Under the pieces are notes generated by a model. It had not been told where the DNA came from, searched no databases, and worked only from the letters and a program-made list of their open reading frames with translations. A program made the translations under genes and the position numbers. From the sequence record NC_020851.1: a stretch of DNA of 64,000 nucleotides; one strand, written 5' to 3'. Shown here in pieces: positions 1 to 43,599 of this stretch (position 1 is its first letter; the number at the start of each line of letters is the position of its first letter).

Positions 1-2331
1 AACTCGACTACTTCTATTGCACTTCTAGTAAATTTTTTAATTTTACTTTGAATTCCATTCTTTTTGAGAGTCGTGTTGACAACAACATTTGATCCATTGT
101 CCAATCCTTTAATGGTTACATTATTATTTGTCAAATTAAAAGAATCGGATGTGATTGTTCCAATTCCACCACCTGAAGCAGTAGTGTAATGTATAGAATA
201 TCTTTCTTGATCAAATGATTCGAAGAATGCACTTGTAATACCTGTTTTAGAAATATCAAAAGTTAAAGTATTGCCAGATACATTTAAATTATCACTTTGA
301 TCTATTTGTTTTGTTATTGCTAACTGTGAATTTGAAAGATCTACTAAAGAGATATTAGATTCTGGAAGATTTGCATAAAGAAATCCATTTTCACTATTTC
401 TTATTTGTGCTTTTCTAAGATTTGCTGTATAATCTCCATTAGAAATTGCGGTTCCAGTAAATACTCCATTAACACTAGGAATATTAGTAATAGTTAGTGA
501 TGCCAGATCTGAAGAAACGGTTACAACTCTATTATACCTCAAACTATTTCCTTGCACTACGCTAATTAAATCACCTTCTTTAACTCCGGAGAATAATTTT
601 CCTGGACTTGTTACAGTTGTAGAAGCAACATTAATTTCTGAAATTCCATTAGAGAACTTTTTAGAAATTAATACTGCATCTGCAGAGAAATCTGGAAAGT
701 TTGATATTCCTGTTTGTTTAACGGATTTGAGTTGGTCAATTGTATTTTGAGTAACACTTGCAATTGTCAATGCTGTTTCAATTCCATTAACAATTAGTTT
801 TTCTCCTGTTACAAAAGTTCCTGAAGTTTGACTGAGATCAAAAGATGTTGAAGAAGAACCAGAAACAACAAAACCACTCGCACCACTACTCTTTCCTTTT
901 ATAAAAGCAGATGTTAAGAGTGTTGTGCTTACATTAAAAATTACATTTGTATAAGTTTGAATATCATAAAGATATAAGTCCCACTGAGTTGCTGCACCAG
1001 AATATGCAGCATCAGTCAAATTAAATGTATATACTCTCGCAGCACCAATTTTTGTTCCTGCCGTCCCATCATCTTGAAGTTGATTATATAAATCTAAAGT
1101 TTCATTTTCTTTTGGAGCACCACTGACATTATTAACTCTAAGTAAATGCCCCATCTCAAATGGGATATTAGCACTACTTATACTTTCCGTATCTCTTGGT
1201 TTTTCTACATCTATAGCAGTTTCTGCGTCTATTGTGACATCATATCCATCAACATATGCTCTTCCAGGACTTACCTGTAGACACATTAAGTCATCTGATG
1301 GAGTATTTCCCTGTTCTGTAGTTTCTCCTTCTAAATATAAACCATCATTATCGATTTGATCATTTAATGAATTGAGTGCTTTAACATCAAACTCATCTAC
1401 GGTATAATGACCAGATTCATCAAATGTTCTTTCGGCAATATAATCCCTTATTAAATTATAGACAGGTTTATTTTCAATTTTTTAATTTTTCCTTCATCTA
1501 CTCTTAAAATCTCTACAAAATCAGTGTCTGTATTATTAGATATTTCTTTTTTGTAAGTGTTAGTGCTATTTTTAATCTATCTGCTCCTGGTGCCGCAAAA
1601 TTAGTAAAACCACTGGCATTATCATACAAAGATGAATCATCTTTTGCATTTACAATCGTTTCAGATATTTTTAATCCTACTCTATAAGAAGGAGTATTTG
1701 TATAATAGTCTAATATAAGTGTTTGCTTGGAAACCTCTACAAATGTTCCTCTAATAAAGTAAACTCCGTTATCAATAAATGCTGCTGAACCTGTAGATGT
1801 TGCTTCTTGAGAAATTAATGATGCAAAAGCAGTTCCTGCACTAATTGTAGTATTGCCATATGTAACATTTTCACTTGCAAATAACTGTTCCCCATCTTGA
1901 AATGTATCTACTTCTGCATCCTCTCCAGATTCTCCATATTTTACATAAATTGTAATGTCAGTTACTAAATCACTATCAGATGTAAGTGCAACTTCCTGAA
2001 TAGATGCTGTCACACCCGAAAGTTGTCCTGTAATCTTTTTTCCAATAAAATTCTTAATATAAACAGATATATCTATTCCTAAATTAACTGCATTTAATTT
2101 TACTGCAGAAAACTGATTATCAAAAGTTACAGATCCTGGAAGGACCATAGATCCTTCTTTAAAAATATTACCACCAAAAGACTCTACTTGATTCTGTAAG
2201 ATGGACTGGAGAGTTGTTAGTTCTCTAGCCTGAACTGGATATCCTGGTTTAAATAAAACTTTATAAAAGTTTTTATCCCCATCAAAATCATCATAGTATG
2301 GGCTGATATTTAAGTCGGTTTTTTGTGCCAT
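1..2331 (-). CDS. DUF4815/VrlC-like virion structural protein, runs off window edge; frame break at A-run ~1545
   Basis: N-terminus MAQKTDLNISPYYDDFD...VLFKPGYPVQARELTTLQSILQNQ is typical of this cyanomyovirus protein after gp8; adding one A restores TKKEISNNTDTDFVEIL...ERTFDESGHY. Confidence 0.8.
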
Positions 2332-2336
2332 CTTTT

Positions 2337-3851
2337 TTAAAATTCTAGAATGATTTTGATGTCTTCTTTTTGTCTAGAGTCTCTCTCGACAATGGGTCTA
2401 TTATCAATATAAATTATATCCCCTGTCTTTTTATTTATCTCCGGATTTGCAAGTCCATCCGTGAAATTAACTCCCAAATTAATCTGTTTATTATTAACAA
2501 CTACAACACTACCATCTAAGTTAGTATTAATACTTGCCGTTCCTCCACTCTGACTAAATTCAATAATATTAGTAGAATCGAATGCTATTATATTTGTTGT
2601 ACTGTTACTAAGTGTTTGATCTACCTTATTTCCAAAACATAAGGATCTGTCTTGATAATATTTCAAAACTTTAGTATCTTTATCAAATGATGCTACATAT
2701 CCTTTTGCTCCAGTTACACTTTGAGTTATTTGTTCACCAATAGTCACATCTCTAGATTCTGATAGTCCAATACCAGAAAGAGATGAGAATGTATTTCCAG
2801 TAAAAGTTACTCCTGCTCCAGAAAATGTTTCAGGATTTTTTATAATTCCAACTTGAGCAAATTTAGTATCTATTGGAAAATCTTTAGTTGAATCATCAAA
2901 TCTCGCATACATTAAAACTTTATCTGTTCCCAACTCCTCATAAATGTTATAACCATGACCTTTTGATGGGGGAATTATGGGTATTAATTTAGCCGGATTA
3001 CCAGTTGCAGGTAGATTGAGAATTCCATAAGTATATCCTTTTCCACCATTTGTAACCGTAACATTTGTTATAACCCCATTAGGTGCTGTAATTGAAACTT
3101 TACCTCCAGTTCCATCTCCTAAAATATCTGCAGTTGCACCATCACTATAACCATCTCCACCATCCTCAATATATACTACCTTTATTTGATTATTATTAGT
3201 ATCAGAGTTTCCTCCTTCTCTAATCGTCTGAATACTAGAATCCGTTGTGGTTAACCAATCATTAGGAACTGTAATATACTCTGTAGAATCAAATTTAATT
3301 ACATCTGATGGAGAAATACTGAATAGATATTTCCATCTATATCCATCAGACCCTGCAACAGATGGTTCTACATCAGTCTGTGTTGGTTCTATTGTTGATC
3401 CTGTAACAGTGGGATCATTGCCATCAGGAGTAGAAGAACCATTATCTATGCAAATATAAACTTTAAATTCACTTGTAAGAACGTAATAATTTGCATCATA
3501 TAATCTTACTGTTTTAGATACAGGAGATTCATTACCTTGTCTATAATCATGGCGATACATGTCGTAAGGAGTATTTGCGACCCATTCAACTTTTCTTATG
3601 ACTCTTCTAGCATTTTCTGATGTAATTTTCTTACCAAATAAACTAGTATCTCTATAATGCGACAAATATTCAAAATTATCTACAGGATTATTAGTTGTGC
3701 TTGTATTCCAATTAGGGTCTCTACCAAATGCAGGATCAGGACTAGTTGGATTTGATAACCCCAAGAAAGCATAATAAGAATTATTACTGATAGACTCTAC
3801 AAAAGAACCAGCATTCAATATTCTAAATTGATCTGTTACGAATGCGGACAT
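2337..3851 (-). CDS. gp8: baseplate wedge subunit gp8
   Basis: MSAFVTDQFRILNA start, DGYRWKYLFSI, IIYIDNRP...RQKEDIKIILEF end; synteny gp25-gp6-gp7-gp8. Confidence 0.85.
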   Translation of the reverse strand: MSAFVTDQFRILNAGSFVESISNNSYYAFLGLSNPTSPDPAFGRDPNWNTSTTNNPVDNFEYLSHYRDTSLFGKKITSENARRVIRKVEWVANTPYDMYRHDYRQGNESPVSKTVRLYDANYYVLTSEFKVYICIDNGSSTPDGNDPTVTGSTIEPTQTDVEPSVAGSDGYRWKYLFSISPSDVIKFDSTEYITVPNDWLTTTDSSIQTIREGGNSDTNNNQIKVVYIEDGGDGYSDGATADILGDGTGGKVSITAPNGVITNVTVTNGGKGYTYGILNLPATGNPAKLIPIIPPSKGHGYNIYEELGTDKVLMYARFDDSTKDFPIDTKFAQVGIIKNPETFSGAGVTFTGNTFSSLSGIGLSESRDVTIGEQITQSVTGAKGYVASFDKDTKVLKYYQDRSLCFGNKVDQTLSNSTTNIIAFDSTNIIEFSQSGGTASINTNLDGSVVVVNNKQINLGVNFTDGLANPEINKKTGDIIYIDNRPIVERDSRQKEDIKIILEF

Positions 3852-6800: not shown

Positions 6801-9800
6801 TAAATTTCTTAGAGAAAATTGGAATACCATTATCAGTTAATTCGAAACTATCTTTATTAATTCTACTAAGATTAATAGCATTATAGAATTTTTCATCAAT
6901 ACTTTCAGTTACAGCACCATATGATAAATCTAAAGGTTCATTAACAACATCTACTTCAGAATAGAATGATTTGCTGAATACTTCAATATCAATTTGACCT
7001 GTTTGATTTGAGTCTGGGAAGAATTTAAGTATTAAATCACTTCCAGATATTTCTCCACCAAATGTTCCAATACCAGAAGCATCATCTAATTCACTATCAT
7101 CATTAGATACTGAAAGGAAAGGTAATTGTTGTGTATAAGCATCAGTTCCTTCATCAATTAACATAACCTGATGAAGTGCTTTTGTAGAACCTATACTTAC
7201 TTGAACTAAAGATTTTGATGCATTAAATAAAGATCTATCTAAAGTTTGAATTGTTGTGGAAGAAGCACCTACTGTAGAATAATATCTAGAATCGTAAATT
7301 ATACTTCTTTCTTGACCATCAAATTGATCAGAAGATTTAAATCTATATGTACCAATTCCAGTAGATGTTGTTCCAAATCCAACAATATTAGTTCTTATCT
7401 TAAGTTGATCGGAAGAAGTATTTTCGTGTATTAGTGATAAAACACCACTTCCCAAGTCAGTGCAAGTGAATATACCTATTTGATTTCCTGTCGAAGAACT
7501 CAAAACATTGCTATCAATATAGTATTCTGATATGAAAGTATTTGTTCCAGCAATAGAAACATACAATCTCACATAATTCATATCATTAGTAACAGTATTA
7601 GTTACTTGTGCATTAACATAAAGAGATTCGAAATTATTAGAATCTAAAGAAATAATTGTTGTAGTTCCAATTCCCACACTAGTATTTTCTATATCAACAG
7701 AACCTGTCAGATTAATAAAACCTATAGATTGTGTTCCAACTCCCGATATATCTGAATTAAATATTTGCTTAATTACTTTTAAATCATAATTTGTATTCAA
7801 TGCATCATTAGGAACGAATCTTAAGAAAGTTTTTTCAGTTTCGTCTGTAAATAAGTCAAAAATACCATAATTAAATTCTTGTCCAGATATGGACTCATTT
7901 TCAACAATGACGGATTCTAATTCATTTTTTAAAATAGTAATATCTGTTAACTGAAGTTCAGTACCATCTTCACTAGACACTCTTAATAAGTAATTGAAAT
8001 ATGTTCTATTGTCAAGTTCGTCTACTAATAAAAATTCTGTAGATTCGGATTCTGAGTTTGAGAACTGATTTTGAAGATCATCAATTGTTAATACATTAAG
8101 ATTTTTTAATTCTGTATAATTTGTGAGTCTTTTACTTTTCAATTTTAAGAATTTTGATTTTGAATCTATAACATCAACATCAATAACATTATCAAAATTG
8201 TTGATAGTGTCTACTCTTTTCTCATCAATTACATCATAAATTATAGTAATTCCATCATTAGTAGTTGTTAAACCTGCACTAGTGTTTGAAGATATTCCAG
8301 TATCTGCAAAATTTTTCAATCCACTTGTATGAACTAAACTTTCTACTGGAGATTGCTGATCTTTATATGTTATTGAACTCTTTACGGAATATGATAAATT
8401 TTGATAGTAGTTATTGTCTGGAGTGACCTGAAAATCTTCGCTTAATTTTCCAGTTTCAGTATCCCAACCAATATCTTTAATATTGGAATAACCAACATTA
8501 AAAGTTCCTTCATTCAGATTCAAAGATTTAATTGTTGCAACAGAACCAGATTCATTTCCAGTAATAACTTCACCTACTGATAACTCATATGACCCTAAAA
8601 CTTTTAAAGAATCTCCATCACTTCCTGTAACTTCCAAATCTCTTATTATTTGATTTGAAGATAAAGTTTCTCCAATAAAAAATTTGGATGGTTCTTGAAC
8701 TATTTTAAATGTAGGATAATCATTTTTATTGATTATAACTCCACTAAAATCTTGAATTGTTTTTGCAATTCCAGTATTTGTAGTGAATTCTTCTACATTA
8801 ATTGTTACTGTATCATTAAGTCCCTCATTATCATAATTAGTTACTTTAAAGAATTTAAATCCATAATCTGAAGAATTAAATCCATCTCCATCAGAACTAA
8901 ATTTCGAAACACCTTCGATGAATACTTCATCTCCATCAGCAAATGGTGGAGTATTAAAAGTATTTCCAATACCAGGTGTTGATATAGTACATGTGAAAAT
9001 ACCAGTATTTGATGATTCTACTTTTTCAATTGCGACACCATTATTATTATTTGTTGAAAAAACTTCTACAGTTTCATCAGGTAAACCTTTTGGTTCAGTT
9101 TCAATTTCCACAGAAGAAATTGCAGATCCTGTTATTTTTGCTTCAATAAATCCAGAATCTATTATACTTCTTGTTGTGGGATTGATGAGAGTAATAAATG
9201 GTGGAGATACATAACCTTCACCTCCACTAATTACTGATATTTGACTCAGTGTATTTGAATCTTTTATTACAATATTTGGTGACACATTGACCTTAGGTCT
9301 TAAGGTTTTATCTGAAGAATAAGTAAATCTGTTATTGATAACTCTACTTTCTTTTATAGATCCTACATTTATTGATCTTGCATTTACAATTAAATCTACT
9401 CCGGAAGTAGAATTAGTAGATTTTAAAGTCGGTAATTTTTATATCCAGTTCCTGAAGATATAATACTTAAAGATTTAACTGGTCCAGATGGAGAAGTTGA
9501 TGTTGTTGAGTACTTTAATATGTCACATTCAGTTGAACCATAAGAAAGTTTTTCTGGTTTTTTCTCAATATTTACATTGAAAGTTGTTGCGGCAACACCA
9601 CTAATAGTGTATGAGTTATTATAGTCACTATTAATATACTTGATACTTGAATAGTTACTAACATCAGTGTCAGATTTGACTAATACTCCATCTTTTTCTA
9701 AGTTATAGAATAATTCACCAATTTGTGAGTTATAATCTAATGTAAGAGTTGCTGTAGATGTTACTCCAACAGTTCCTACCCCAGATACACTGAAAGTATT

Positions 9801-12800
9801 TGTAGAACCAGTAGAAACAAATTCATTATTAAACTCTTTGTCCTGATATAATCTCAGACTATAATTTACCAATGAAGAATCTGAAAGGTCAAATACTAAA
9901 TTATTATTTTTAACTGGTTGTAATTGTGGATTAATTAATGCTATTGTTTGTGAAGAACTTCCTGTAGAAGCAAAAGATACAACTGTTGGAGGATTTTGTT
10001 GAGAATCTATTAAAGTTTCACAGAGATTGATTCTATTTCTATTAATTTTGTAGACATAGTACTCACTATTAGTTAATGGTGATGGTCTAATAAATCTTCT
10101 AATAATATCATTACCACTAGAAGCAGCATAGAAATTTTCTTCGTCTGGGGAAACAGACATTACTGTTGGTGTATTTGGAGATCCCAAATCAATTCTATCT
10201 AATTCAGTGCCAGTAACAATGTCCCATGGTGTTGATAATTTATAAATGTAAATATTATCTGAACCAGCTCCGACCCAGTATACTAAGGTTCCAGAAGAAT
10301 TGATATGTATATCATTTGGATTTGTATCTGGAGGACTGACATCTAACCTACCCGTGCTATCTCCCGAATAGGATGCTGTTGTAATATCCCATGAGGTTGA
10401 AAGATCAAATTGGTAAATAAAATCTCCATTACTTCCAATTAAGTAAAGTACTGAACCATCATATTTAAAATAAAGTCCCGTTGGATTAATTTGTTGAGAG
10501 AATCCGTCAATAGAATTACCACTACCAACTAATAAACTTACATTATCATAACTTGCTGTGGTAAGATCCCATGCAGAAGTCATAGAATACTGATAAATTG
10601 TATCATTTTCATTACCGGTAATCCAGAACTTAAGACCATCCTCTCTGATATAAAGTCCAGTAGGACTGTTGTCTTCTGATGTAACATCAAACCTGTCCGT
10701 AAATACTGCCGTGCTCACACTCCAAGGTGTTGAAAGTGCATATTCATTGACTTCATCAGCAGAACTACCGAGAGCATACATTTTAGTTCCATCTGGTTTG
10801 AAACGTAATGATTGTAGACTACCATCTTGGGAACTAGTGTCTAATTGATCACTAGTTTCAATTAAGTATTCAAAATTATCATCTTCATAAAGAACTTTAT
10901 CACCAGTTACTAATTTATGATCTGTAATTGTGATTTCATTAGTTACTGTATTAATTCCTGTAGAGTTAAATCCAATTGGATTGACTACGATATTATCAAT
11001 TTCAGATTTATAAAGAACACGAACTGCTGTTGAAGTTCCAATACCCACTGAAAGATTTGGTTGAACATCTAATGTTACCGTATCTCCATTTTGAAGTTCA
11101 TGAGAAGTTGATACTGAAACGGTTACTACATTCTTATCCACATCTCCCAATATTTGAGTGTAATTAGATTCGAATGAATACTTATCACTATCATTTCCAT
11201 TATTATGGAAGAATAATTCTTCACCTGTAATTGCAGTCTTCAGTCCAATAATACTTGGACTTTTCTTAACAATAAAAAGATTACTTGGTATATTTACTGG
11301 GACAGATGTCCCATCAGTAGAAACAGTTAAGGTTGTTCCATTAGCAGTGTAAACAACTGGTTGATTTGTTACAAAAGGATGATTTTCGATGTAAATACCT
11401 TTTGTAGGAATACTTCTAGTTACAGTCGAAATATCACCAAATGTAAATGATGTACTATATCCAACCCCACTTATTGTCCCAACACCAACAGATTCTCTAG
11501 GATTGAAGAAAGCCTTATCATTTACTTTTGAATCAAATTTATCTACAGATTTGGCAATTGTAAATGAATCTGGTAAGAAAGATACTGCCGTTCCAACAGT
11601 ATGTGATACACCTGCCAAACCTCTTTCAATTCTGAGAATATTTTGGTTTTTAAATACTTCAAGAACTTTTAAAGTTTCTGTTCCAATATCAATACTACTA
11701 CCAACAGATACCTGTTCTGGAATTGGAGAAACATAAATTTCTGTCGTAAATCCTACAGATGCAGATGTTATTGTAGAAAGACATCTTCCATTTGCATAAG
11801 AAGGAACTGTGATTTGATGTGTTCCATTAAGTGCTGATAGATTTGTAGAAAATCCAGATACAGTTACATAATCTAGATTTAAAAGATCATGATTGGGTAA
11901 TATTGATACTTTTACTTTACTAGTAGATTCCCATGTAAAAATAGAATTTAAGTATTCAGTTGAATTTGTATTTAATTCTACGATACTCTTTCCCTTAATG
12001 GAAGCAACACTAACATCTAAACCACTTCCTGATGTGTCAGTGTTATCAAATATCAATCTATCTCCAACTTTATAATTGCTACCAGAATTTTCAATCTCTA
12101 TGGATTTTACAGAGTCTGATGTTACAGATACTACTTCTATTTTTTGATCTAGAACATCACTGGTTTCATTAATAAAATCATAATCAGCATTCAGTTCTGA
12201 TACTTTATATGGTAGTGTATTTCTTAATAAATTTGAATTATTGAAATCAAATGATTGGTCCAAATTAGAATCAGAAATTAATTTTGATTTATACTTATTA
12301 CCTATAAAATAGGGGAATTGATTTATCGTAGCATGATATACATAAACACCATTTGGATACTCTTCATTTTTTTCATATCTACCATTATATTCATCTAAAT
12401 CTCCATCTCCATTAAATTGATAATCCTCGACAAAAAATCCATCATCAAATCCAGAAGGTCTATCTACAACATTTGAAGAATCGAGAGTGTATCCAGATTC
12501 TAGTGTTTTTACTCCTGAAGGTATTGCAGGATCAGGATATCCATATGGACCGTAAATTGGATTTCCATCATATGCCCAACCAATAATCCCAGATCGTGAA
12601 GTTGCATCTTCTAAGAAAGCATTTCTCAAATCTTCAAAATACTTTGATACTGAATATTGGAGTTTATCTTTACCTTCTAGTAAAACTTCTCCTGTAGGAA
12701 ATCTTACAATATTATCATTAAGAGTTAATTTTCTGACTTGAGGATCAATAAAGGAATTATTTCCTGATGAAACAACTTGAATCTTTGTGTTTGATGCTGA

Positions 12801-15800
12801 ATATCCAATACCAGTATTCAGAACCTTAACTTCTGATATTTGACCATTATTAATTATTGCTCGTAATTCTGCACCGGTTCCAGAACCAGAAACAATCAAT
12901 TCCGGAACAGAATAATATTCACTCCCAACAAAACTTGTAAAAACACTAATTATTCTTCCATCAACAATAGATGGTGTTAATTGAGCAGATTTTCCATTTT
13001 TTATAGAAATTATTGGTTTTTTCTCTAAATTTAAAATTGTGGACCCATATCCAGTTCCAGATTCATAAACATAAGCATCAATAATGCTTCCTTTTACTAC
13101 TGGAGTTAATACTAAGTCTTGATACTCTTGAGTAGTAGTTCCAAATCCTACAGAATTATATTTAATTGAAACAGAAATGTCCGGATATTTGAAATATTGA
13201 TATCCACTTCCCGTACTATCAAATGTTTTATAATCTTGCCTTTCATAATTAGAAACAACTGTTCCCCCAATTCCGGCATCACATAATCTAAACGAATCGT
13301 CGTCAACTTTTAAAATAAAGTATTGATTTGCAGTTGTAATTCCAGATATCTGCCCAGATTCATAATCATATTCTACAATTTCACCATTATTAAATCCATG
13401 ATTCTTAAAGTTAATAGAGTTTTGTGTCGTAGATATTCCGGTAGGACTTACAATCAACTTTCTATTCGTATATCCTTCACCTTTGTCAATTACTTTTATG
13501 TAAGAAACTTGTCTTGAAGACGAAAGTGTTGAGAATTTATGTGATCCAATAGAACCTGTATAGATTCCTACAACATTTGTATCTGATTGTTGATCACTTA
13601 AATTATTATATAATTTTATTGCTTTATTGTTAGTAACACCAACAAAATAGGTTGAATTAGTAGGAAGATTGATATTATTTCCTGCAGTTCCAATTGCTAT
13701 TGGATCATTACCTAAAGGATTATAAATTACTTCTTGACCATTAACAAAGTTATGATCTGTTAAAAATACAATTTGATTCGTTGTTTCACTGACTCCCCCA
13801 CCACTAGAAAATTCATCTGCATCAAATAAAACTTCTCTGGGTTTTTTGATTATTACGGGTTCAATTACTGCACCACTACCATTTCCACCTGAAATATTAA
13901 TAGAGGTTATTTCTCCAATATTATAATCTTGCGAATCTACATATACTTTTTCAAAACCTCCACTAATGACTGGTTGAATTTTTGCAGTAATACCAGCACC
14001 AGTAGAAACATTAACTAATGGTAGATTAATTACATCAAAATTTTCACCACCAGAAAGAATATTTACTTTCTCAATTGGGCCATAATAAATTGCATCTTTA
14101 GATTTGTAATTATTAATTTCGACACCATTAATTAGCATTCCAGTAGTTCCCGGAATCGTTAAAGTTCCAGAACCATTTTCAATATTTTTTCTAATGGAAA
14201 CTTTCTTAAAAGTTTTTGTATTCCTAGATCAGTTTTTATTTGAGAGTTTAAAGTAAAAGTATGAGTTCCTATGCCAGAATTTGGTACTTGAAATGTTACA
14301 TTACTGTCCGAATTTAATAAAGAGGGTGTAGTATATAATTTAAATTTATTTGTAGATGTTACTTTTACATAATAATTGCCAGTTTGCAATCCAACCAAAG
14401 GTTCATCTTGTGGAAGATAATATATTTTATCTCCTGTTAAAAATGGAATAGAAGGATTGAATTCAATTGTATTATAAACATCTTCAAAAAAATCTACAAG
14501 ATTATTTGTGCTAGCAATACTTACTTTTTTAATACTAGTTTCAATATCAAGACGATAATTTATAATTTTTTCATCATCTTCGTCTAAAATTACTTCTGAT
14601 GGTAGTGAATTTGATGCAACATATGCATAATCATCTTTATCAGCATATACATTAAGAATGTCTGATAATACAGAACTACTCCCAAAATCTGAACCTGAAG
14701 ATTTTGTTTTATTTAATTTTCTTCTTATATCATATTCTTTACTTGGATCTAAAGTTGGTCTGTTTCCTAATGTTAAAGAATTTTGGGATTCATTAGTATT
14801 TTGGATATAAGTCGTATCATTAGAAAATACTATATTTTCACTTCCTCTTTCTAATATTTCAACCTTATCTCCAATTTTTAAACTGGATCTATCAATAGTA
14901 GATCCTAACTTAGTAGTATTATTATCTACAATTTCATATCTTGCACTTGTATTGTAGATAAAAGAATTTGCAAAAATTTCTTTCCAGGTTGAATTTCTAT
15001 TCTTAATCTTATCTCCAAGATTTTTGACTACAATTATATCGTTTTCATCTACTTTAAAGTCTTCATTTTCTTCTACTAAATCTTGTATTACTCCAAGTAA
15101 TATTAATTCAACTTTCTTGGAAGTATCGCCATCTTCATAGGAAAAATAAGTATCATCAGATCTAATATTTGATGCTGTAGATATTGTATCACTGATACCA
15201 GTACATCCAAAAAACTGATTAATACTTTTTCCAGTATAAGAAATAGTATTATTTCCAGAAACTAATGTTCCTGATTGTGGAAAACTTAAAGTAGAATCTA
15301 CAGTTAAGATGGTTGATCCCACTGATACACTTTCAATTAACTTTGTATTTGGTGTGATTTCAAAATTTCCTACAACTGATGAAGAATTCTCAGTATTTCC
15401 AATATAAAATTCAATTTTATGGAATGTTTTACCTTTTCTTGAAAATGGTTCTATTGCCGATATTGAAGCAGTTGTGTTCTCATCAGTGGTCTTTATAAGA
15501 GTTTGTCCGACAATCTTTGAGGGTTCTCCTGATATTACCTCTGCTATTGCAACTTCTCTTCTTACATAATTTGCAGAAGATGGTTTGATTAAATAATCTT
15601 CCAAATTTATAATTGAAGGTGTTTCCCCAAAAATAACTTTAAAAAGAATTTTTATTGCTTCATCTGTTCCTTTAGAAGCATAAAAATCTTTTGCTCTTCT
15701 GATGAAATTTCCAACATCAATTTCATCTACAAATTTAATATCTTCTAATCCTGGAGTAAAAGTATACTTCAGTTTTTTATAAAAATCCTTTAAAAATAAA

Positions 15801-16282
15801 GAACTTAAATTTTGTACAGATGAACTATCAGAATGTTCTGCTGCTGTTGATGTAGAAAAAACAAGTTCTTCTTTATTTAAATCTTGATGATAATCTGTAA
15901 CACCACTAAATCCGCGCACACAACCAGTAAAACTATTCGTAGTAATTCCTGTATATGTGATGATTTCATCATTAATTTTAAGGAGTCCATACTGATTAGG
16001 GAATCCTTTTGTGCTAGAGACATTAATTGTAGTGTCAGTAGATGTTATACTAGTACTAGTTGTCGTACTATCAACAATAACTTCGGGTTTTAAATTATCT
16101 AATTTTAAATACTGATCCAGATTATCACTAATATCAATAGGACCACCTTGATATTCTTGTGAAATATAATATTGTTTTAAAAATTCTACAGCATTTGGAC
16201 TTTCATCCAAGATAAACTCTGGAAGTTGATGATCAATTAGATCTTGTACTTTGATTCTAGATTCAAAACCAGTTTGTATCAT
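3896..16282 (-). CDS. gp7: giant baseplate wedge initiator gp7-like protein (~4130 aa), split by frame breaks at ~14188, ~9438, ~6107
   Basis: ORFs 14159-16282, 9423-14138, 6097-9285, 3896-5674 join when one base is added to each homopolymer; N-terminus LPEFILDESPNAVEFLKQYY; GWAYDGNPIYGPYG motif; lies between gp6 and gp8. Confidence 0.75.
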
Positions 16283-16283
16283 A

Positions 16284-18185
16284 TTACTTTCTTACTAAAT
16301 TTCCGTTTGAATAACTTGATGTATAGAAGTCGTTAACAAATCTGGTGCCAGATATTTCATCCCCAGAAGCAATCACATCCCTGACAATATTTATTGTACT
16401 TTTAGGAATGTTTAATGAGACATACAAGTCTCTTAGTCCAACAACATCATTAGATTCTGGGAATGCTTGTATTTCAATTAATCCGTTACTTAATGAAGTT
16501 GAAGTGATATTAACAGTTCCTAAAATTATTTCTCCTTTTAAGTAATCAACAGTTCCTGCAGATTTCACAACTACTCTTGTTTCATCAGATATTTGCTTTA
16601 CAATCGATAAAGTACCTGTTTTCAAATCTGCATTAGGAACATCTGTAAAATATACGGTATCGGTTTCTCCTGAAATTTTAAATCCTGTGGATTTGATATT
16701 AAGACCTTCAGATTTTACATTAAACCTATTTCCATAACATAGTTCATATTGAGCAAATTTATTGAGTACAGGCTTTAAATCTCTGCGAATAATAATTTTT
16801 GTAATATTTGATGTAATTGCAGTATCAGTATTATCAATAACTTGTTGTAATTTACTATATCTAAGTCTTCCACCAAATTTATTTAAATCTAAAGATTCTG
16901 AATATTTTTGAAGAGAGTTTGTAACAGAAGTTTTTAATGTATCTGAATTCGATACTTGTGAATAATTATAGTAAACAGAACTATTGAGTTCAACATAAAG
17001 AATTTTAAGGTCAGTTATCTTCTGATTTATTCCAGATACTGTAAATTGTTTTAGTTTTGACAAAATCTGAGTCTTATTGAAATCCGAAACAAAACTTCCG
17101 TTTTTTGGCTTAATACTAATTTGAACTGTACCAAACTGAGGAGGATCCATTTCCTCTCCACCAACTACAGATACTGATTCGGTATCTGGATATATTCTTT
17201 TTATAATTGCTTCGTAGTCTCTTGATGTAACCGCTCTATACTGAGAAGAATATAGTCTTGGTGCATAATACTTGATTGAATCTATTGGTTCAATATCACC
17301 ACCATTGATTGATGATTGATTAGTTGTAATCGTAACAGTTCCTGGATCAATAATTCCACCAGTCGCATTCTCTAATGTTCCAGAGAATGAAAAATTAGAA
17401 GCACCATTGCCATCTCTTCCATCCGTAATGATATAGTTGGCAGTAATTATAGTTCCATCAGAACCAACTTCATCACCCAGTTTCTTGCCAATCAGTCCGT
17501 CACCAAATCTCAATTCATATTTTTCATCTTGAACTTCATTAATAAAGAAGATTCTAGAGTTTTTATCTATATCAAAAATATTTTCTGAAAGAAAATATTC
17601 AATACCAACTCCAGATTGTTCAGTTTTTTTGATATAAACTTTAAGTGTTGATGTATCGATAAATGAATTATTTAAAACAAATCTTTGGTCTAATGAACCA
17701 TCATATTGAAATTGCTTGGTTAAGAATATTCCCTGATAAACATCAAGATTATTAAAAGATGCTATACCGTCCACAACGTTTGCTGTAACGTCTTCTGGGA
17801 CGGCAAAGGTGTATGTAGTGTCATTAGTACTCCCTACGCACACTATACCTGCCTTCAGGGTGAGTGTAGGAGTACCTGTGCTAGTTGTTACATTAAAGGA
17901 TATTTGTGCCGTTGATGCGACTCTGGAACGGGGGACATATCCAATGTTACCTGCCAGAGAAACTACATTCTCACGAAGAGTTGCAGAATCCAAAAAGGAT
18001 TCATTCACAACCATATTCGAATTGAATGCAGTAATGTAAGTATTATATGCTAACGTATCAATTAAAACTGAAAAGTTTGATCCTTCAAAATCAAAGTCCG
18101 TAAATGTAGAGTTGGCACGGAGATAATCTTTGATAGAAGTTTTTATCTGATCAAAATCTAAATTTGTATATTTTGTAAAAGGCAT
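16284..18185 (-). CDS. gp6: baseplate wedge subunit gp6
   Basis: LDFDQIKTSIK..FTDFDFEGSNFSVLIDTLAYNTY, QYRAVTSRDYEAII. Confidence 0.92.
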   Translation of the reverse strand: MPFTKYTNLDFDQIKTSIKDYLRANSTFTDFDFEGSNFSVLIDTLAYNTYITAFNSNMVVNESFLDSATLRENVVSLAGNIGYVPRSRVASTAQISFNVTTSTGTPTLTLKAGIVCVGSTNDTTYTFAVPEDVTANVVDGIASFNNLDVYQGIFLTKQFQYDGSLDQRFVLNNSFIDTSTLKVYIKKTEQSGVGIEYFLSENIFDIDKNSRIFFINEVQDEKYELRFGDGLIGKKLGDEVGSDGTIITANYIITDGRDGNGASNFSFSGTLENATGGIIDPGTVTITTNQSSINGGDIEPIDSIKYYAPRLYSSQYRAVTSRDYEAIIKRIYPDTESVSVVGGEEMDPPQFGTVQISIKPKNGSFVSDFNKTQILSKLKQFTVSGINQKITDLKILYVELNSSVYYNYSQVSNSDTLKTSVTNSLQKYSESLDLNKFGGRLRYSKLQQVIDNTDTAITSNITKIIIRRDLKPVLNKFAQYELCYGNRFNVKSEGLNIKSTGFKISGETDTVYFTDVPNADLKTGTLSIVKQISDETRVVVKSAGTVDYLKGEIILGTVNITSTSLSNGLIEIQAFPESNDVVGLRDLYVSLNIPKSTINIVRDVIASGDEISGTRFVNDFYTSSYSNGNLVRK

Positions 18186-26353: not shown

Positions 26354-26518
26354 TTACTTAGCAGGGAAATTCTTACACACAGCATCACATAAAATCTTCA
26401 CAAGTTCTTCATCATAATTGACATCATACTGTGCAAAGTAATCAGTGATGATACAATCAATGTCTTCCATCAATTGTTCACGACTAGTTAACATGTCAAG
26501 TGTGTCGTTGTTAATCAT
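26354..26518 (-). CDS. small acidic early protein (54 aa)
   Basis: manual translation MINNDTLDMLTSREQLMEDIDCIITDYF. Confidence 0.6.
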   Translation of the reverse strand: MINNDTLDMLTSREQLMEDIDCIITDYFAQYDVNYDEELVKILCDAVCKNFPAK

Positions 26519-26525
26519 TTTTAGG

Positions 26526-26605
26526 GTGAATTCCTGATGACTTAACTACAATACATGATTTTAGGGTCATGTGCTCATATAGTGTGCCACTTCCCCGACT
26601 GTCAC
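26526..26605 (-). promoter_or_regulatory. early promoter cassette F
   Basis: -10 TATTGT 26548-53; dyad 26586-603. Confidence 0.75.
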
Positions 26606-26680
26606 ACTCATAAGGTCTCTCTATGGGTCTTATAAGGTCTTCTAATGCCCTCTCGTGACAGTCGGGGAAGTGGCACACTA
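26580..26680. repeat. perfect 26-bp inverted repeat, 49-bp spacer
   Basis: TAGTGTGCCACTTCCCCGACTGTCAC (26580-605) and its reverse complement (26655-680). Confidence 0.95.
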
Positions 26681-26712
26681 ATACACGTCTACGGTCTCTC
26701 TGATGCTAATAT
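26657..26712 (+). promoter_or_regulatory. rightward copy of the early promoter
   Basis: dyad 26657-74 then 32 bp then TGc-TAATAT 26707-12, same spacing as cassette F. Confidence 0.5.
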
Positions 26713-26830
26713 CAACATTCTCGTCACCTTCCAGTCCTAAGATATCATTCCAATCAATATCTTTAAGATTTAAATCATCATAACACTCGATGTCTAATGT
26801 AACACTTATGATGCGTTTGTGTGCGTACAT
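26678..26830 (-). CDS. small acidic protein (50 aa)
   Basis: manual translation MYAHKRIISVTLDIECYDDLNLKDIDWNDILGLEGDENVDISIRETVDVY. Confidence 0.6.
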   Translation of the reverse strand: MYAHKRIISVTLDIECYDDLNLKDIDWNDILGLEGDENVDISIRETVDVY

Positions 26831-26906
26831 GTGTATCTCGTATGATGTGTGTTATAATGTGTTATGTGTACACATATCTCGTAATGTATACATGTATCTC
26901 GTAACG

Positions 26907-27110
26907 TTATGCGTAATGTTTATACGCAAGCTCTACGTAATCACATGTATCTCGTGCGTACTCATCATCTATCTCGTATGTATCCTGGGTGTTATGTGTA
27001 TCTCGTAGTGTATATGTATCTCGTGCATAATGCTCACACATCTCGTCTTTATAATACGTATAAGACTCGTTGTTATAATGATACTGTAACTCGTGGTCTT
27101 CGTAATACAT
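26907..27110 (-). CDS. Tyr/Asp-rich small protein overlapping the TCTCG array
   Basis: 67-aa ORF ending EYARDTCDYVELAYKHYA, resembling small ORFs I recall from other cyanomyoviruses. Confidence 0.5.
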   Translation of the reverse strand: MYYEDHELQYHYNNESYTYYKDEMCEHYARDTYTLRDTHNTQDTYEIDDEYARDTCDYVELAYKHYA

Positions 27111-27200
27111 GGGTCTCGTCGAGATTTGTATGTTACTTGTATATTATACAGACATCTCGCACGTATGTCAAGTATGATCTCGTGCGGCATTCATAAGCAT

Positions 27201-27208
27201 TATTTATA
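27201..27208 (-). promoter_or_regulatory. possible T4 late promoter TATAAATA
   Basis: exact match; a second at 27487-94; both in AT-rich context. Confidence 0.4.
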
Positions 27209-27257
27209 AGTCTCGACGAGAAAAATGTGTGGGTCTCAGAGTTTTTATGCGGGGTGC

Positions 27258-27286
27258 TTGACAAAACTGCCGTCTTGTGGTAGAGT
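27258..27286 (+). promoter_or_regulatory. rightward sigma70 promoter with no downstream ORF
   Basis: TTGACA-17-TAGAGT with extended -10 TG. Confidence 0.7.
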
Positions 27287-27308
27287 GCGGGTAAAGGTCA
27301 CAAGTCTC

Positions 27309-27412
27309 AGAAGGTTTATAAGAGTATTAGAGAAGGTTTATAAGAGTATTAGAGAAGGTTTATAAGAGTATTAGAGAAGGTTTATAAGAGTATTAGAGAA
27401 GGTTTATAAGAG
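27309..27412 (+). repeat. 22-bp tandem repeat x4.7 (iteron-like)
   Basis: AGAAGGTTTATAAGAGTATTAG at 27309, 27331, 27353, 27375 plus 16-bp partial at 27397. Confidence 0.95.
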
Positions 27413-27413
27413 G

Positions 27414-27464
27414 TTTTCCACACATAAAAGACACTTATCCACAGAAATAACCCACTTATCCACA
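27414..27464 (+). promoter_or_regulatory. three DnaA-box consensus sites at 21-bp spacing
   Basis: TTTTCCACA 27414-22, TTATCCACA 27435-43, TTATCCACA 27456-64. Confidence 0.75.
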
Positions 27465-27570
27465 GACTTGTTGGAAAACAGTTTTATATTTATAATCATA
27501 TTTAAAACCTATTTTTTAACTCATAATGTAACAATCGATACAAAATACATAGTTTAGTCATGTAATCAAT

Positions 27571-27600
27571 AGTATAAGGCATCTAGGAACACTTATGGGT
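27571..27600 (-). promoter_or_regulatory. leftward promoter facing the DnaA boxes
   Basis: TAGATGCCTTATACT, shared with promoters at ~28500 and ~28760. Confidence 0.45.
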
Positions 27601-27791
27601 TAGTTGACATGAATAGTTAGAGTTTTACCATCTGATGACAAACCTATGGAGCAGTGAGTGAGTTCCGGTCTAATCTCTCTATGACTAACAGTAGCACCCT
27701 TGTGATAATGGGACGAATGATCAACAACTAACTCTTCAACACTTGATAGTATTGTTGCATAGATTTCATTTGAATCAATTATGTACTTCAT
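27600..27791 (-). CDS. hypothetical protein
   Basis: 63-aa ORF overlapping upstream stop (ATGA). Confidence 0.6.
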   Translation of the reverse strand: MKYIIDSNEIYATILSSVEELVVDHSSHYHKGATVSHREIRPELTHCSIGLSSDGKTLTIHVN

Positions 27792-28510
27792 TTTTTATCA
27801 CCAAATAGTTTGTTCATATAATCAAGCACATCATCATTAACAGTATCATTAATAGATGCATCTACTACATCATCAATAGCATTACCTGTCAATACACTCT
27901 TAGTTGCAGAAGCAGTAATTAGAAATGCCTTAAGTTTATCCTTCGTCTTATCTTCTTTCTTCTTTCTTTTTATGGCAACGATTTCATCAATACGACTTTG
28001 AATCTTTTCATTCAGAGTAGAATTAAATCCTACCTTTGACATATCATGCAATCTGAGGAATTCCTCAGATAAAGTTTCTCTCAGAAAGATTGGTGAATTG
28101 ATATAACAATCAATCAGATCATCAGGAAGATGAACATTCAAATATAATTTTGGATGACATGTGTTTTCATCATTCATATATAAAAACCCAGAACGATGAG
28201 TATCATAAATGGCACGAAGGATTTCTTCATCATCAGATGTTTTTGCCCATTCACCAATTATTGTTCTATCTTCTTTCCAAACATAAAGCAAACAAATAGG
28301 TCCTCGCCTCTTAGAATACTGTGCTTTCCATTCAGGAAGAGAATGTTCTTTATAAATTTCTGACGTAATTGTTGCTTCTTTAATAACATACAGAATTAAT
28401 TCTTTTTCTGTTGCAAATAATGGGTCTGGGTCTGGAACTGAATTAGATTCGGTCTGATGAGAAAAGAAGTTAAACATGTGTTTGTTTTGTATGTGATTAT
28501 TATAGGGCAT
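27788..28510 (-). CDS. hypothetical protein (240 aa)
   Basis: long ORF behind TATAAT promoter at ~28499. Confidence 0.7.
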   Translation of the reverse strand: MPYNNHIQNKHMFNFFSHQTESNSVPDPDPLFATEKELILYVIKEATITSEIYKEHSLPEWKAQYSKRRGPICLLYVWKEDRTIIGEWAKTSDDEEILRAIYDTHRSGFLYMNDENTCHPKLYLNVHLPDDLIDCYINSPIFLRETLSEEFLRLHDMSKVGFNSTLNEKIQSRIDEIVAIKRKKKEDKTKDKLKAFLITASATKSVLTGNAIDDVVDASINDTVNDDVLDYMNKLFGDKK

Positions 28511-43099: not shown

Positions 43100-43599
43100 G
43101 AGTTGTCCTCCATTTGGTTGAATGCGTCAATCAGTTCCTGGCTGCCTGATTCTGTGATTAGTCGTTGAAGTTTGTCTTTAGGCGTTTCGATAAACGCCCA
43201 CTTACGACCGTTGATTTCGCCCTCGACATCGCCACCGACAGTGCCATAGACATTGCCTTTGACATCGCCATAGACATGGCCATCGACCTCGCCTCCGATA
43301 CTGCCTTTGACACTGCCTATGACACCGCCACCGACATTGCCATGGACAATGCCATAGACGTTGCCTCCGATTCCGCCTTCGACATTGCCTCCGATATTAC
43401 TTTTGATATCGCCATCGACAGCGCCATAGATATTGTCCTTGACATCGCCATAGATACTGCCCTCGACATCGCCTTTGACATCGCCTCTGACACCGCCATT
43501 GACAGTGCCATTGACAGTGTGGATTCTCCAGCCACAGACATCCGTGTGATAGAAACCAACAAGCTTTAGAGCTTCTCTAAGTGTTATTTGTTTGGTCAT
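43096..43599 (-). CDS. G-x-V-x repeat (beta-helix-like) protein
   Basis: ~25 tetrapeptide repeats GDVK/GDVE/GNVY. Confidence 0.7.
   Translation of the reverse strand: MTKQITLREALKLVGFYHTDVCGWRIHTVNGTVNGGVRGDVKGDVEGSIYGDVKDNIYGAVDGDIKSNIGGNVEGGIGGNVYGIVHGNVGGGVIGSVKGSIGGEVDGHVYGDVKGNVYGTVGGDVEGEINGRKWAFIETPKDKLQRLITESGSQELIDAFNQMEDNS

Follow-up and report, generated by a model that had tools for sequence, protein, structure and literature searches.

What role does a perfect 22-bp tandem repeat play in a non-coding gap of a T4-like cyanophage, next to a cluster of host-type DnaA boxes? The window, that is, the whole 64,000-nucleotide stretch of DNA that was analysed, matched positions 124001–188000 of Synechococcus phage S-SKS1 (NC_020851, 208,007 bp) with 100% identity. 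On the best reading of the sequence comparisons, the array arose recently, in this lineage only, by tandem amplification of a motif composed of GGTTTATAAG and TATTAGAGA, located in the predicted leader of a rightward promoter. It would form the variable, promoter-proximal part of a conserved module that consists of this promoter, the repeats, the DnaA boxes, an inverted box and an AT-rich tract. Positions are those of the window unless stated otherwise.

Genome setting

S-SKS1 infects WH7803, which is also the host of S-BM3. Its annotation shows a T4-type gene set, with genes almost always on the minus strand, and the array neighbourhood is a block of small early-type genes. The record annotation includes a T4-type replisome with a helicase loader: the replication and recombination genes are gp43, gp41, gp61, gp45, gp44/62, gp32, a gp59-like loader and UvsX and UvsY homologues, and a primase-helicase, gp46/47 and the late factors gp55 and gp33 are listed as well. 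GC skew was monotonic in S-SKS1 and uninformative as an origin marker because nearly all genes lie on one strand. Near-consensus sigma-70 promoters (at most one mismatch) were found on the minus strand, with the genes, in 33 of 39 cases, a strong strand bias. They are probably genuine early promoters.

In the baseplate region, two stretches of about 7 kb each (record 118975–126337 and 133285–140284; window 1–2337 and 9285–16284) have no annotated CDS, and the locus tags SWZG_00161 and SWZG_00165 are absent from the annotation. The two stretches may be large genes that were broken or left unannotated.

The 22-bp tandem array

The features at the centre of the locus are as follows.

27309–27412, plus strand: 22-bp array of 4.7 perfect copies (TRF, unit search, k-mer depth)
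26907–27110, minus strand: SWZG_00191, a small acidic Tyr/Asp-rich protein of 67 aa, the first gene after the leftward promoter P_left (conserved ORFs)

SWZG_00191 has conserved ORFs in L006 and AG-345-L05 (BLASTP E=6e-12). Because this ORF is a real gene, the non-coding gap that holds the array extends over 27111–27599 (489 bp). The array consists of four copies of AGAAGGTTTATAAGAGTATTAG and a 16-nt partial copy. TRF called a period of 22 with 4.7 copies, 100% matches and no indels (score 208), in agreement with the preliminary description, which had reported 4.7 perfect 22-bp copies at this position. The unit gave 4 matches at no more than 3 mismatches versus 0 in 100 shuffles. It joins the core GGTTTATAAG to the 9-mer TATTAGAGA and has no C on the plus strand; alternatively, it can be read as a spacer AGGTTTATAAGAG followed by the same 9-mer. 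Only G27413 stands between the array and the first DnaA box, TTTTCCACA at 27414, so the reported distance of 1 bp is exact.

The array had been described as the only perfect tandem array in the window and as non-coding. By TRF, it is the only perfect non-coding tandem array even across the whole 208,007-bp genome, and all arrays with a higher score fall within structural genes. The sole overlapping ORF (27225–27365, plus strand) begins upstream of the rightward promoter, and its frame is broken by the 22-bp units. A coding repeat was rejected on this ORF start, on a period that is no multiple of 3 and on stop codons within the unit. A CRISPR array was also rejected, as the copies are contiguous and have no spacers. 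A dispersed operator was discarded too: GGTTTATAAG occurs 7 times in the S-SKS1 genome, with 5 of these occurrences in the array. A repeat of another kind, imperfect and with a 12/36-bp period (about 25 × 12 bp, 67% matches), lies at 43217–43516 inside the minus-strand gene SWZG_00239 and is therefore a coding repeat. A similar repeat sits upstream of the homologue of the neighbouring 240-aa protein in L006.

For the copy number, k=31 contigs from the sequencing run of S-SKS1 itself were examined; at either end of the array they break off 30 nt into it. Two repeat-internal contigs were present, one of 44 nt with 14 k-mers at depth 33 and one of 38 nt with 8 k-mers at depth 42.3; the k-mer depth of the flanks was 13.7 and 11.2. 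A 104-bp array predicts exactly 14 k-mers in three copies and 8 in four copies, which corresponds to an observed depth of 11.0 and 10.6 per copy. The depth supports 4.7 copies and not the one or two that the preliminary description had named as the sign of an assembly artefact. Because the k-mer depth matches a 104-bp array, an artefact was rejected.

The preliminary description had further proposed that sites repeated at about two helical turns would face the same side of the helix. As 22 bp amounts to 2.1 turns, successive array sites rotate by about 34 degrees and are not strictly on the same side; the DnaA boxes, spaced 21 bp apart, do share a face. The part of the proposal that holds is the phase relation with the boxes. 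The TATTAGAGA 9-mers and the DnaA boxes form one series with starts at 27325, 27347, 27369, 27391, 27414, 27435 and 27456, giving spacings of 22, 22, 22, 23, 21 and 21 bp, and judged from these positions the idea of phasing is stronger than first stated. The 9-mer found no support as a weak DnaA box: it differs at 4 positions, and 12% of random genomic 9-mers come equally close. Spacers between phased DnaA boxes were also compared in unrelated viral contigs; of 168 distinct 12-nt sequences, three were one mismatch from GGTTTATAAGAG.

DnaA boxes and AT-rich tract

Three further features follow the array.

27414–27464, plus strand: three DnaA boxes TTTTCCACA, TTATCCACA and TTATCCACA in the same orientation, 21-bp spacing (motif scan)
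27469–27478, minus strand: degenerate inverted DnaA box TTTTCCAACA, head-to-head with box 3 (read from the sequence)
27480–27520, no strand assigned: AT-rich tract, a candidate unwinding element (stability scan)

The box TTTTCCACA starts at 27414, and the two TTATCCACA boxes start at 27435 and 27456. The pattern TTWTCCACA has only 9 sites in the 208 kb of S-SKS1, three of them within the 51 bp of 27414–27464, which is the sole cluster. In the relatives, 1 of 27 box columns varied versus 4 of 12 spacer columns (p=0.025). Where boxes are present in relatives they are perfect, while the spacers change in sequence and length. S-SKS1 thus has what an oriC-like element would require, a cluster of host-consensus DnaA boxes under selection. 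In vitro binding has been described for TTTTCCACA, the cyanobacterial DnaA box (PMC4674748). Phased TTTTCCACA triplets in genomes were cyanobacterial in about 60 of 80 cases among the matches listed. Two chromosomal loci with such triplets were checked for a dnaN-adjacent oriC, and neither was visibly beside dnaN. The inverted box has the counterpart TGTGGAAAA in S-BM3 and L051 and TGTGGAGAA in S-SM2.

The AT-rich tract includes a conserved 19-mer, TTTAAAACCTATTTTTTAA, at 27501–27519. It belongs to the least stable 0.04–0.09% of windows genome-wide and ranks about 21st among the unstable loci. Its sequence is conserved in SynMITS9220M01, S-SM2, S-BM3 and AG-345-L05. All variants with 21/21 box spacing place the tract 87 bp from box 1; this is the fixed geometry between boxes and unwinding element that would be expected of an oriC-like element.

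Promoters and palindromes

The left part of the gap carries the following elements.

27258–27286, plus strand: P_right, predicted promoter TTGACA-17-TAGAGT with extended -10 TG (consensus score 10/12)
27221–27249, no strand assigned: conserved block AAAAATGTGTGGGTCTCAGAGTTTTTATG just upstream of the P_right -35 (six aligned relatives)
27143–27171, minus strand: P_left, perfect TTGACA-17-TATAAT, predicted early promoter, divergent from P_right (score 12/12)
27114–27124, no strand assigned: palindrome TCTCGTCGAGA just downstream of the P_left start site (sequence)
27211–27221, no strand assigned: palindrome TCTCGACGAGA between P_left and P_right (sequence)

P_right points into the array and opposite to all neighbouring genes. 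Its -35 and the TGnTA...T pattern are invariant in six relatives despite a diverged or replaced promoter spacer, and the block at 27221–27249, invariant in 6/6 aligned relatives, is the best-conserved part of the region. A counterpart of P_right precedes plus-strand ORFs in L008, L018, L006 and S-BM3. P_left is one of 8 perfect promoter sites in the S-SKS1 genome, all of which lie on the minus strand. The two palindromes are the only TCTCGNCGAGA sites in the genome.

Around P_left, ten direct ATCTCGT/GTCTCGT copies, all on the plus strand, were counted at 26835–27183 versus 4 in the remaining window. This cluster lies partly outside and partly within SWZG_00191, which holds most of it and encodes ARDT/LDE-like repeats there, and it has the TCTCG half-site in common with the palindromes flanking P_left. 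S-BM3 carries an analogous cluster of ATCTAGACTAGA palindromes at the corresponding place. P_right, the inverted box and the AT tract at fixed distance, all omitted from the preliminary description, carry most of the functional signal.

The predicted transcript

The leader and array together are 68% purine with 4 C in 121 nt, a composition in the top 0.024% of genome windows. The predicted P_right RNA is less structured than shuffled sequences (fold z-score +2.18; worse than 199 of 200 shuffles), and no Rfam match was found on the array, so a structured non-coding RNA was rejected. Purine-rich, C-poor transcripts favour RNA–DNA hybrids, and the composition of this leader together with its low RNA structure would likewise favour such a hybrid.

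Marine metatranscriptome contigs cover parts of the region; they are strandless and also include the promoter, and for these reasons do not establish the P_right transcript. In metatranscriptome run X20, the summed contig depth was 435 over 27192–27266, the bin of the conserved block upstream of P_right, versus 35–47 in the neighbouring bins, which may reflect summing over many related phages and not expression.

Variation among environmental relatives

No cultured phage sharing the S-SKS1 gap was found. Uncultured relatives were therefore retrieved via the neighbouring 240-aa protein and via the 22-mer itself. Among 16 environmental relatives, at least 12 different arrangements of the core GGTTTATAAG were observed, with about 1 to at least 9 core copies per relative, and copy number and period (11 or 22 bp) differed in almost every one. 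Examples of the repeat tract are listed here.

L136: 2 units
L009: two 11-mers and two 22-mers
L144: 4 units
L138: at least seven tandem 11-mers and two 22-mers, abutting the box as in S-SKS1
L008: three tandem 11-mers, which are missing from its near-twin L007

A fixed iteron array, as implied by the preliminary description, does not agree with these contigs. The perfect copies and the copy-number differences among relatives are those of a variable-number tandem repeat arranged head to tail. Since the repeat tract varies and the spacing from boxes to AT tract is fixed, the S-SKS1 array is a recent local amplification of a composite unit, and the perfect identity of its copies also indicates a recent origin. 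As the repeat number runs from about 1 to at least 9, the array itself is dispensable. The relatives of the S-SKS1 group all keep at least one core copy, including those without boxes. Between the P_right -35 and box 1, the distance ranged over 113–169 bp among variants with no conserved helical phase, and phasing between promoter and boxes was rejected on this ground. Taken on sequence conservation, the DnaA boxes and the AT tract are the rigid core of the module.

Some relatives carry a plus-strand ORF in this region. L006, L018 and L146 have it downstream of the promoter and have lost the DnaA boxes; L008 has it downstream of the boxes. Read on the minus strand of each locus, these ORFs lie at about 2250–2325 in L008, 6700–6960 in L018 and 7900–8075 in L006. 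By eye, their N-termini look like those of GIY-YIG (MAYIYSITNNLNGKQYIGKTT; MKQGTIYLIINKVNGHKYVGQTT) or HNH homing endonucleases. S-SKS1 and the L009 type have no rightward ORF, yet retain promoter, boxes and AT tract. The last ~30 nt of L140 (OJET01000724.1), inside its repeat tract, read CTGTCTCTTATACACATCT..., which we take to be the Nextera transposase adapter; this contig end is artefactual.

Related modules in viral contigs and cultured Kyanoviridae

Triple DnaA boxes in phase are frequent in viral contigs (more than 115 among the matches listed). In several groups with TTTTCCACA boxes, motifs of the TTTATAAG or TTTATGAG type precede the boxes and a similar AT tract follows them, and the L050 group has a single CACATTTATAAGG at the position of the array. 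S-SM2 has a perfect leftward promoter and an opposed TTGACA-17-TAGAAT, followed by the leader GCTTAGATCAC, the boxes and the AT tract. Its boxes are TTTTCCACA, TTATCAACA and TTTTCCACA at 10–11-bp spacing, with an inverted box. S-BM3 has the same layout, followed by plus-strand genes. Simpler versions of the S-SKS1 module are thus present, as judged from layout and motifs, in the cultured cyanomyoviruses S-SM2 and S-BM3.

Bellamy and SynMITS9220M01 have the promoter, the leader and the AT tract, and other short repeats replace the DnaA boxes. In SynMITS9220M01 (L149, 880–960), two copies of ATATCACC occupy the box position, and in AG-345-L05 (L135, 3210–3300), four copies of (C)TATTGAGAA do so at 20–25-bp spacing, which suggests that the box region of the scaffold is modular. 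No tandem array is present at this position in S-SM2, Bellamy or SynMITS9220M01. The Kyanoviridae leader aligns by eye with that of the S-SKS1 group, and GGTTTATAAG then matches the single CACATTTATAAGG of the L050 group.

Neighbouring genes and the search for an initiator

The remaining genes around the gap are given below.

26678–26830, minus strand: SWZG_00190, a small acidic protein of 50 aa, phrog_12516 (family match)
27600–28510, minus strand: two converging genes of 63 aa and 240 aa with no functional match (context only)

Genes of S-SM2 and Bellamy at the same position next to the module resemble SWZG_00190 (by eye, unscored). Close by, a perfect 26-bp inverted repeat (26580–26605 and 26655–26680, 49-nt loop) overlaps the minus-strand ORF 26511–26678; its sole Rfam matches were weak, miRNA-like hairpins well below threshold. 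On the other side, the minus-strand gene at 27600–27791 converges on the module.

No Rep family was found in the 8 flanking ORFs by Pfam, PHROGs and atlas searches. The 240-aa neighbour gave no family match, no PDB match in a profile search and no Foldseek fold match; its AlphaFold model is all-helical (pLDDT 66.5). L012 carries a homologue of this protein with no module. The 240-aa protein was therefore rejected as a Rep partner of iterons, on the lack of matches, the all-helical model and the break of synteny in L012. The neighbouring-gene searches identified no binding protein or Rep-like gene for the array.

Comparison with known systems

T4 origins consist of a promoter and an AT-rich unwinding element and act through an R-loop; in oriE, an early promoter is found together with direct repeats at even spacing, whose role is undefined (PMC3016281). 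S-SKS1 is likewise a T4-type phage with an early-mode sigma-70 promoter, evenly spaced direct repeats and opposed transcription. The S-SKS1 repeats, however, have no similarity in sequence to oriE and a unit of 22/11 bp versus 12 nt, and the origin role in S-SKS1 is a prediction. The likeness to oriF and oriG lies in a promoter followed by an AT-rich tract, in the gp59-type loader and T4-type replisome, and in the purine-rich unstructured transcript of S-SKS1. The T4 promoters of this kind are MotA-dependent middle promoters and have the unwinding element within a minimal origin of about 100 bp, whereas in S-SKS1 the repeats and DnaA boxes come first and the AT tract is reached only about 190–230 nt from the predicted start. 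The AT-rich downstream unwinding element of a T4-type origin is present, but farther from the start site than in T4. We know of no host DnaA boxes at T4 origins; S-SKS1 has them.

The origins of iteron plasmids (pPS10, R6K gamma, RK2 oriV, P1 oriR, F oriS) have direct repeats of about 22 bp beside DnaA boxes and an AT-rich region. S-SKS1 also has direct repeats with a period of about 22 bp beside DnaA boxes and an AT-rich region, and its 4.7 × 22 bp agree with an iteron set of at least three direct repeats of about 17–22 bp at ~22-bp spacing. It differs in having neither a cognate Rep gene nearby nor inverted half-iterons in a rep promoter. Number and arrangement of the repeats, which should be conserved among close relatives in an iteron origin, are hypervariable here (at least 12 arrangements in 16 contigs), and the element is found in a lytic T4-like phage. 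A comparison of R6K with the T4 repeats has been made (PMC3016281).

With bacterial oriC, the module has in common host-consensus boxes of the TTTTCCACA type, phased and in both orientations, and an AT tract at a fixed distance. It differs in having only 3–4 boxes and no recognised DnaA-trio, and in lying in a phage genome behind a strong promoter. The iss region of T5, whose function is itself hypothetical, is also a conserved non-coding region of a lytic phage with direct repeats (nine copies of one in T5), palindromes and DnaA boxes, and some members of both groups have an inserted homing endonuclease. In T5, however, paired boxes 3 bp apart lie within long inverted repeats in the terminal repeat, whereas the three boxes of S-SKS1 are spaced at 21 bp and stand behind a promoter, and two-step injection is not known in S-SKS1.

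Interpretation of the module

The reading ranked first, with a probability of about 0.4, is that the module is a cis-acting element for the initiation of phage DNA replication, similar to T4 oriE or oriF but equipped with host DnaA boxes. The repeats would then be a phased extension of the DnaA box array, a part of the reading that is held just as tentatively. It is ranked first because all parts of a T4 origin are present, the host boxes are fixed to the AT tract and the transcript is purine-rich and C-poor. Transcription by host RNA polymerase would start at P_right and run across the repeats, which are C-free and purine-rich. The AT tract would open with the help of host DnaA that binds at the boxes and might also spread over the in-phase repeats, and the transcript or the opened DNA would let the phage T4-type replisome load, as at T4 oriE, oriF and oriG. 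Also counted in favour were the unique array, the conserved P_right, the sole box cluster, the 87-bp geometry, the unstable AT tract, the in-phase 9-mers, the near-GGTTTATAAGAG spacers elsewhere, the T4 replisome and the recurring scaffold. Counted against it were the uninformative GC skew, the lack of an initiator gene in the searches and the variation of the repeat number from about 1 to at least 9. The AT tract is only about 21st among the unstable loci, homing-endonuclease insertions have cost some relatives the boxes and the AT tract, and in Bellamy, SynMITS9220M01 and AG-345-L05 other short repeats take the place of DnaA boxes. To our knowledge, T4 itself does not use DnaA.

P_right could simply be an mRNA promoter, because it precedes ordinary ORFs in S-BM3 and in the homing-endonuclease contigs, and a regulatory leader is the main rival for the same reason. 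P_right would then serve as a normal early promoter of a short rightward unit whose cargo varies (homing endonucleases, small ORFs or, in S-SKS1, antisense RNA). Acting as operators, pause sites or roadblocks, the boxes and repeats would couple its output to host DnaA or to a phage regulator. Sigma-dependent pausing could result from the -10-like TATAAG/TATTAG on the non-template strand. The plus-strand ORFs behind P_right in L008, L018, L006 and S-BM3 fit such a leader, as do the divergent promoter pair with palindromes between, which resembles a control region, the position of the repeats at about +15 to +120 of the predicted transcript and the tolerated variation in promoter–box spacing. 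S-SKS1 and the L009 type, however, keep promoter, boxes and AT tract with no rightward ORF to control; a roadblock needs neither the rigid 87-bp spacing nor a head-to-head inverted box, and GGTTTATAAG, with five of seven copies in the array, is no operator elsewhere in the genome. We consider a leader of this kind a serious candidate that is nevertheless somewhat unlikely. A transcript that acts as RNA, for instance by sequestering an RNA-binding protein or by antisense pairing with the converging genes, and whose repeats are reiterated binding motifs, has in its favour the strong conserved promoter with no downstream ORF in S-SKS1, an SD-like AGAAGGU in the unit and the metatranscriptome contigs. 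But these contigs lack strand information and also carry the promoter, the RNA is less well folded than nearly all shuffles and has no Rfam match on the array, a DnaA box is an element of DNA, and the number of repeats is unconserved. This makes an RNA function highly improbable.

For the array alone, replication slippage or unequal recombination in a recombination-rich T4-like phage could be the source of the copies. Only a single leader motif copy, or none, would then matter, and 4.7 copies would be a neutral expansion. The diversity of arrangements in related contigs points this way, as does the clean loss of three 11-mers between the near-identical L008 and L007. So do the single CACATTTATAAGG of the L050 group and the lack of a tandem array in S-SM2, Bellamy and SynMITS9220M01. 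Against a purely neutral history, every relative of the S-SKS1 group, box-less ones included, keeps at least one core, expansions recur independently at 11- and 22-bp periods, and the 9-mers remain in phase with the boxes. A functionless expansion is unlikely. It concerns the array only and is compatible with either a replication or a leader role of the module; the array may be largely neutral in length. The boxes, multiplied by the number of phage genome copies, might instead absorb host DnaA and block host initiation, with the repeats as accessory bending or binding sites, or, by analogy with a proposal for the T5 injection-stop region, might tether incoming DNA to membrane-bound DnaA. Strong host-type boxes in a lytic phage with no obvious need for DnaA would be explained by either role, and the conserved non-coding region of T5 combines repeats, palindromes and 8 DnaA boxes (bioRxiv 10.1101/866236). 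Three boxes are a small sink, however, several relatives replaced or lost them, and the conserved promoter, the fixed AT tract and the inverted box are left unexplained. A DnaA trap or tether is accordingly very unlikely, and it, like an RNA function, is less likely than a replication origin or a regulatory leader.

Extended to the family, the replication-origin reading would hold that T4-like cyanophages (Llyrvirus and several Kyanoviridae) share a promoter-linked origin that recruits host DnaA through modular boxes, the array being a second, non-DnaA set of initiator sites in phase with them. Some lineages would have swapped the boxes for phased 8- or 9-mers (TATTGAGAA, ATATCACC and, in S-SKS1, TATTAGAGA) read by some phage or host factor. 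Motif comparisons across the contigs leave room for such a shared origin and for the swap of boxes, each of which we regard as possible but doubtful.

Significance for T4-like cyanophages

Searches of the literature on cyanophages together with DnaA, DnaA boxes or replication origins gave no description of this module, and the papers that mention S-SKS1 do not address it. Each kind of element, that is, direct repeats, DnaA boxes, an AT tract and a promoter-primed origin, is well known; their combination in T4-like cyanophages looks new. T4-like cyanophages are among the most abundant viruses of the ocean, and we know of no replication origin defined for any of them, in the literature searched or otherwise. 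The module of about 300 bp is a precise, conserved and experimentally tractable origin candidate, with cultured phages and culturable hosts at hand (S-SKS1 and S-BM3 on WH7803). The natural repeat-number variants are a ready allelic series for the function of the repeats, including any role beyond that of a spacer, a question that is also open for the iterons of T4 oriE. If the module is merely a regulatory leader, it would still be a case of conserved use of host DnaA boxes by lytic phages, beside that of T5. If host DnaA is used for initiation, its recruitment would go beyond what T4 biology would predict; phage replication would be tied to the initiator of the host cell cycle, and this could be relevant to the way in which cyanophage replication depends on light and on the cell cycle.
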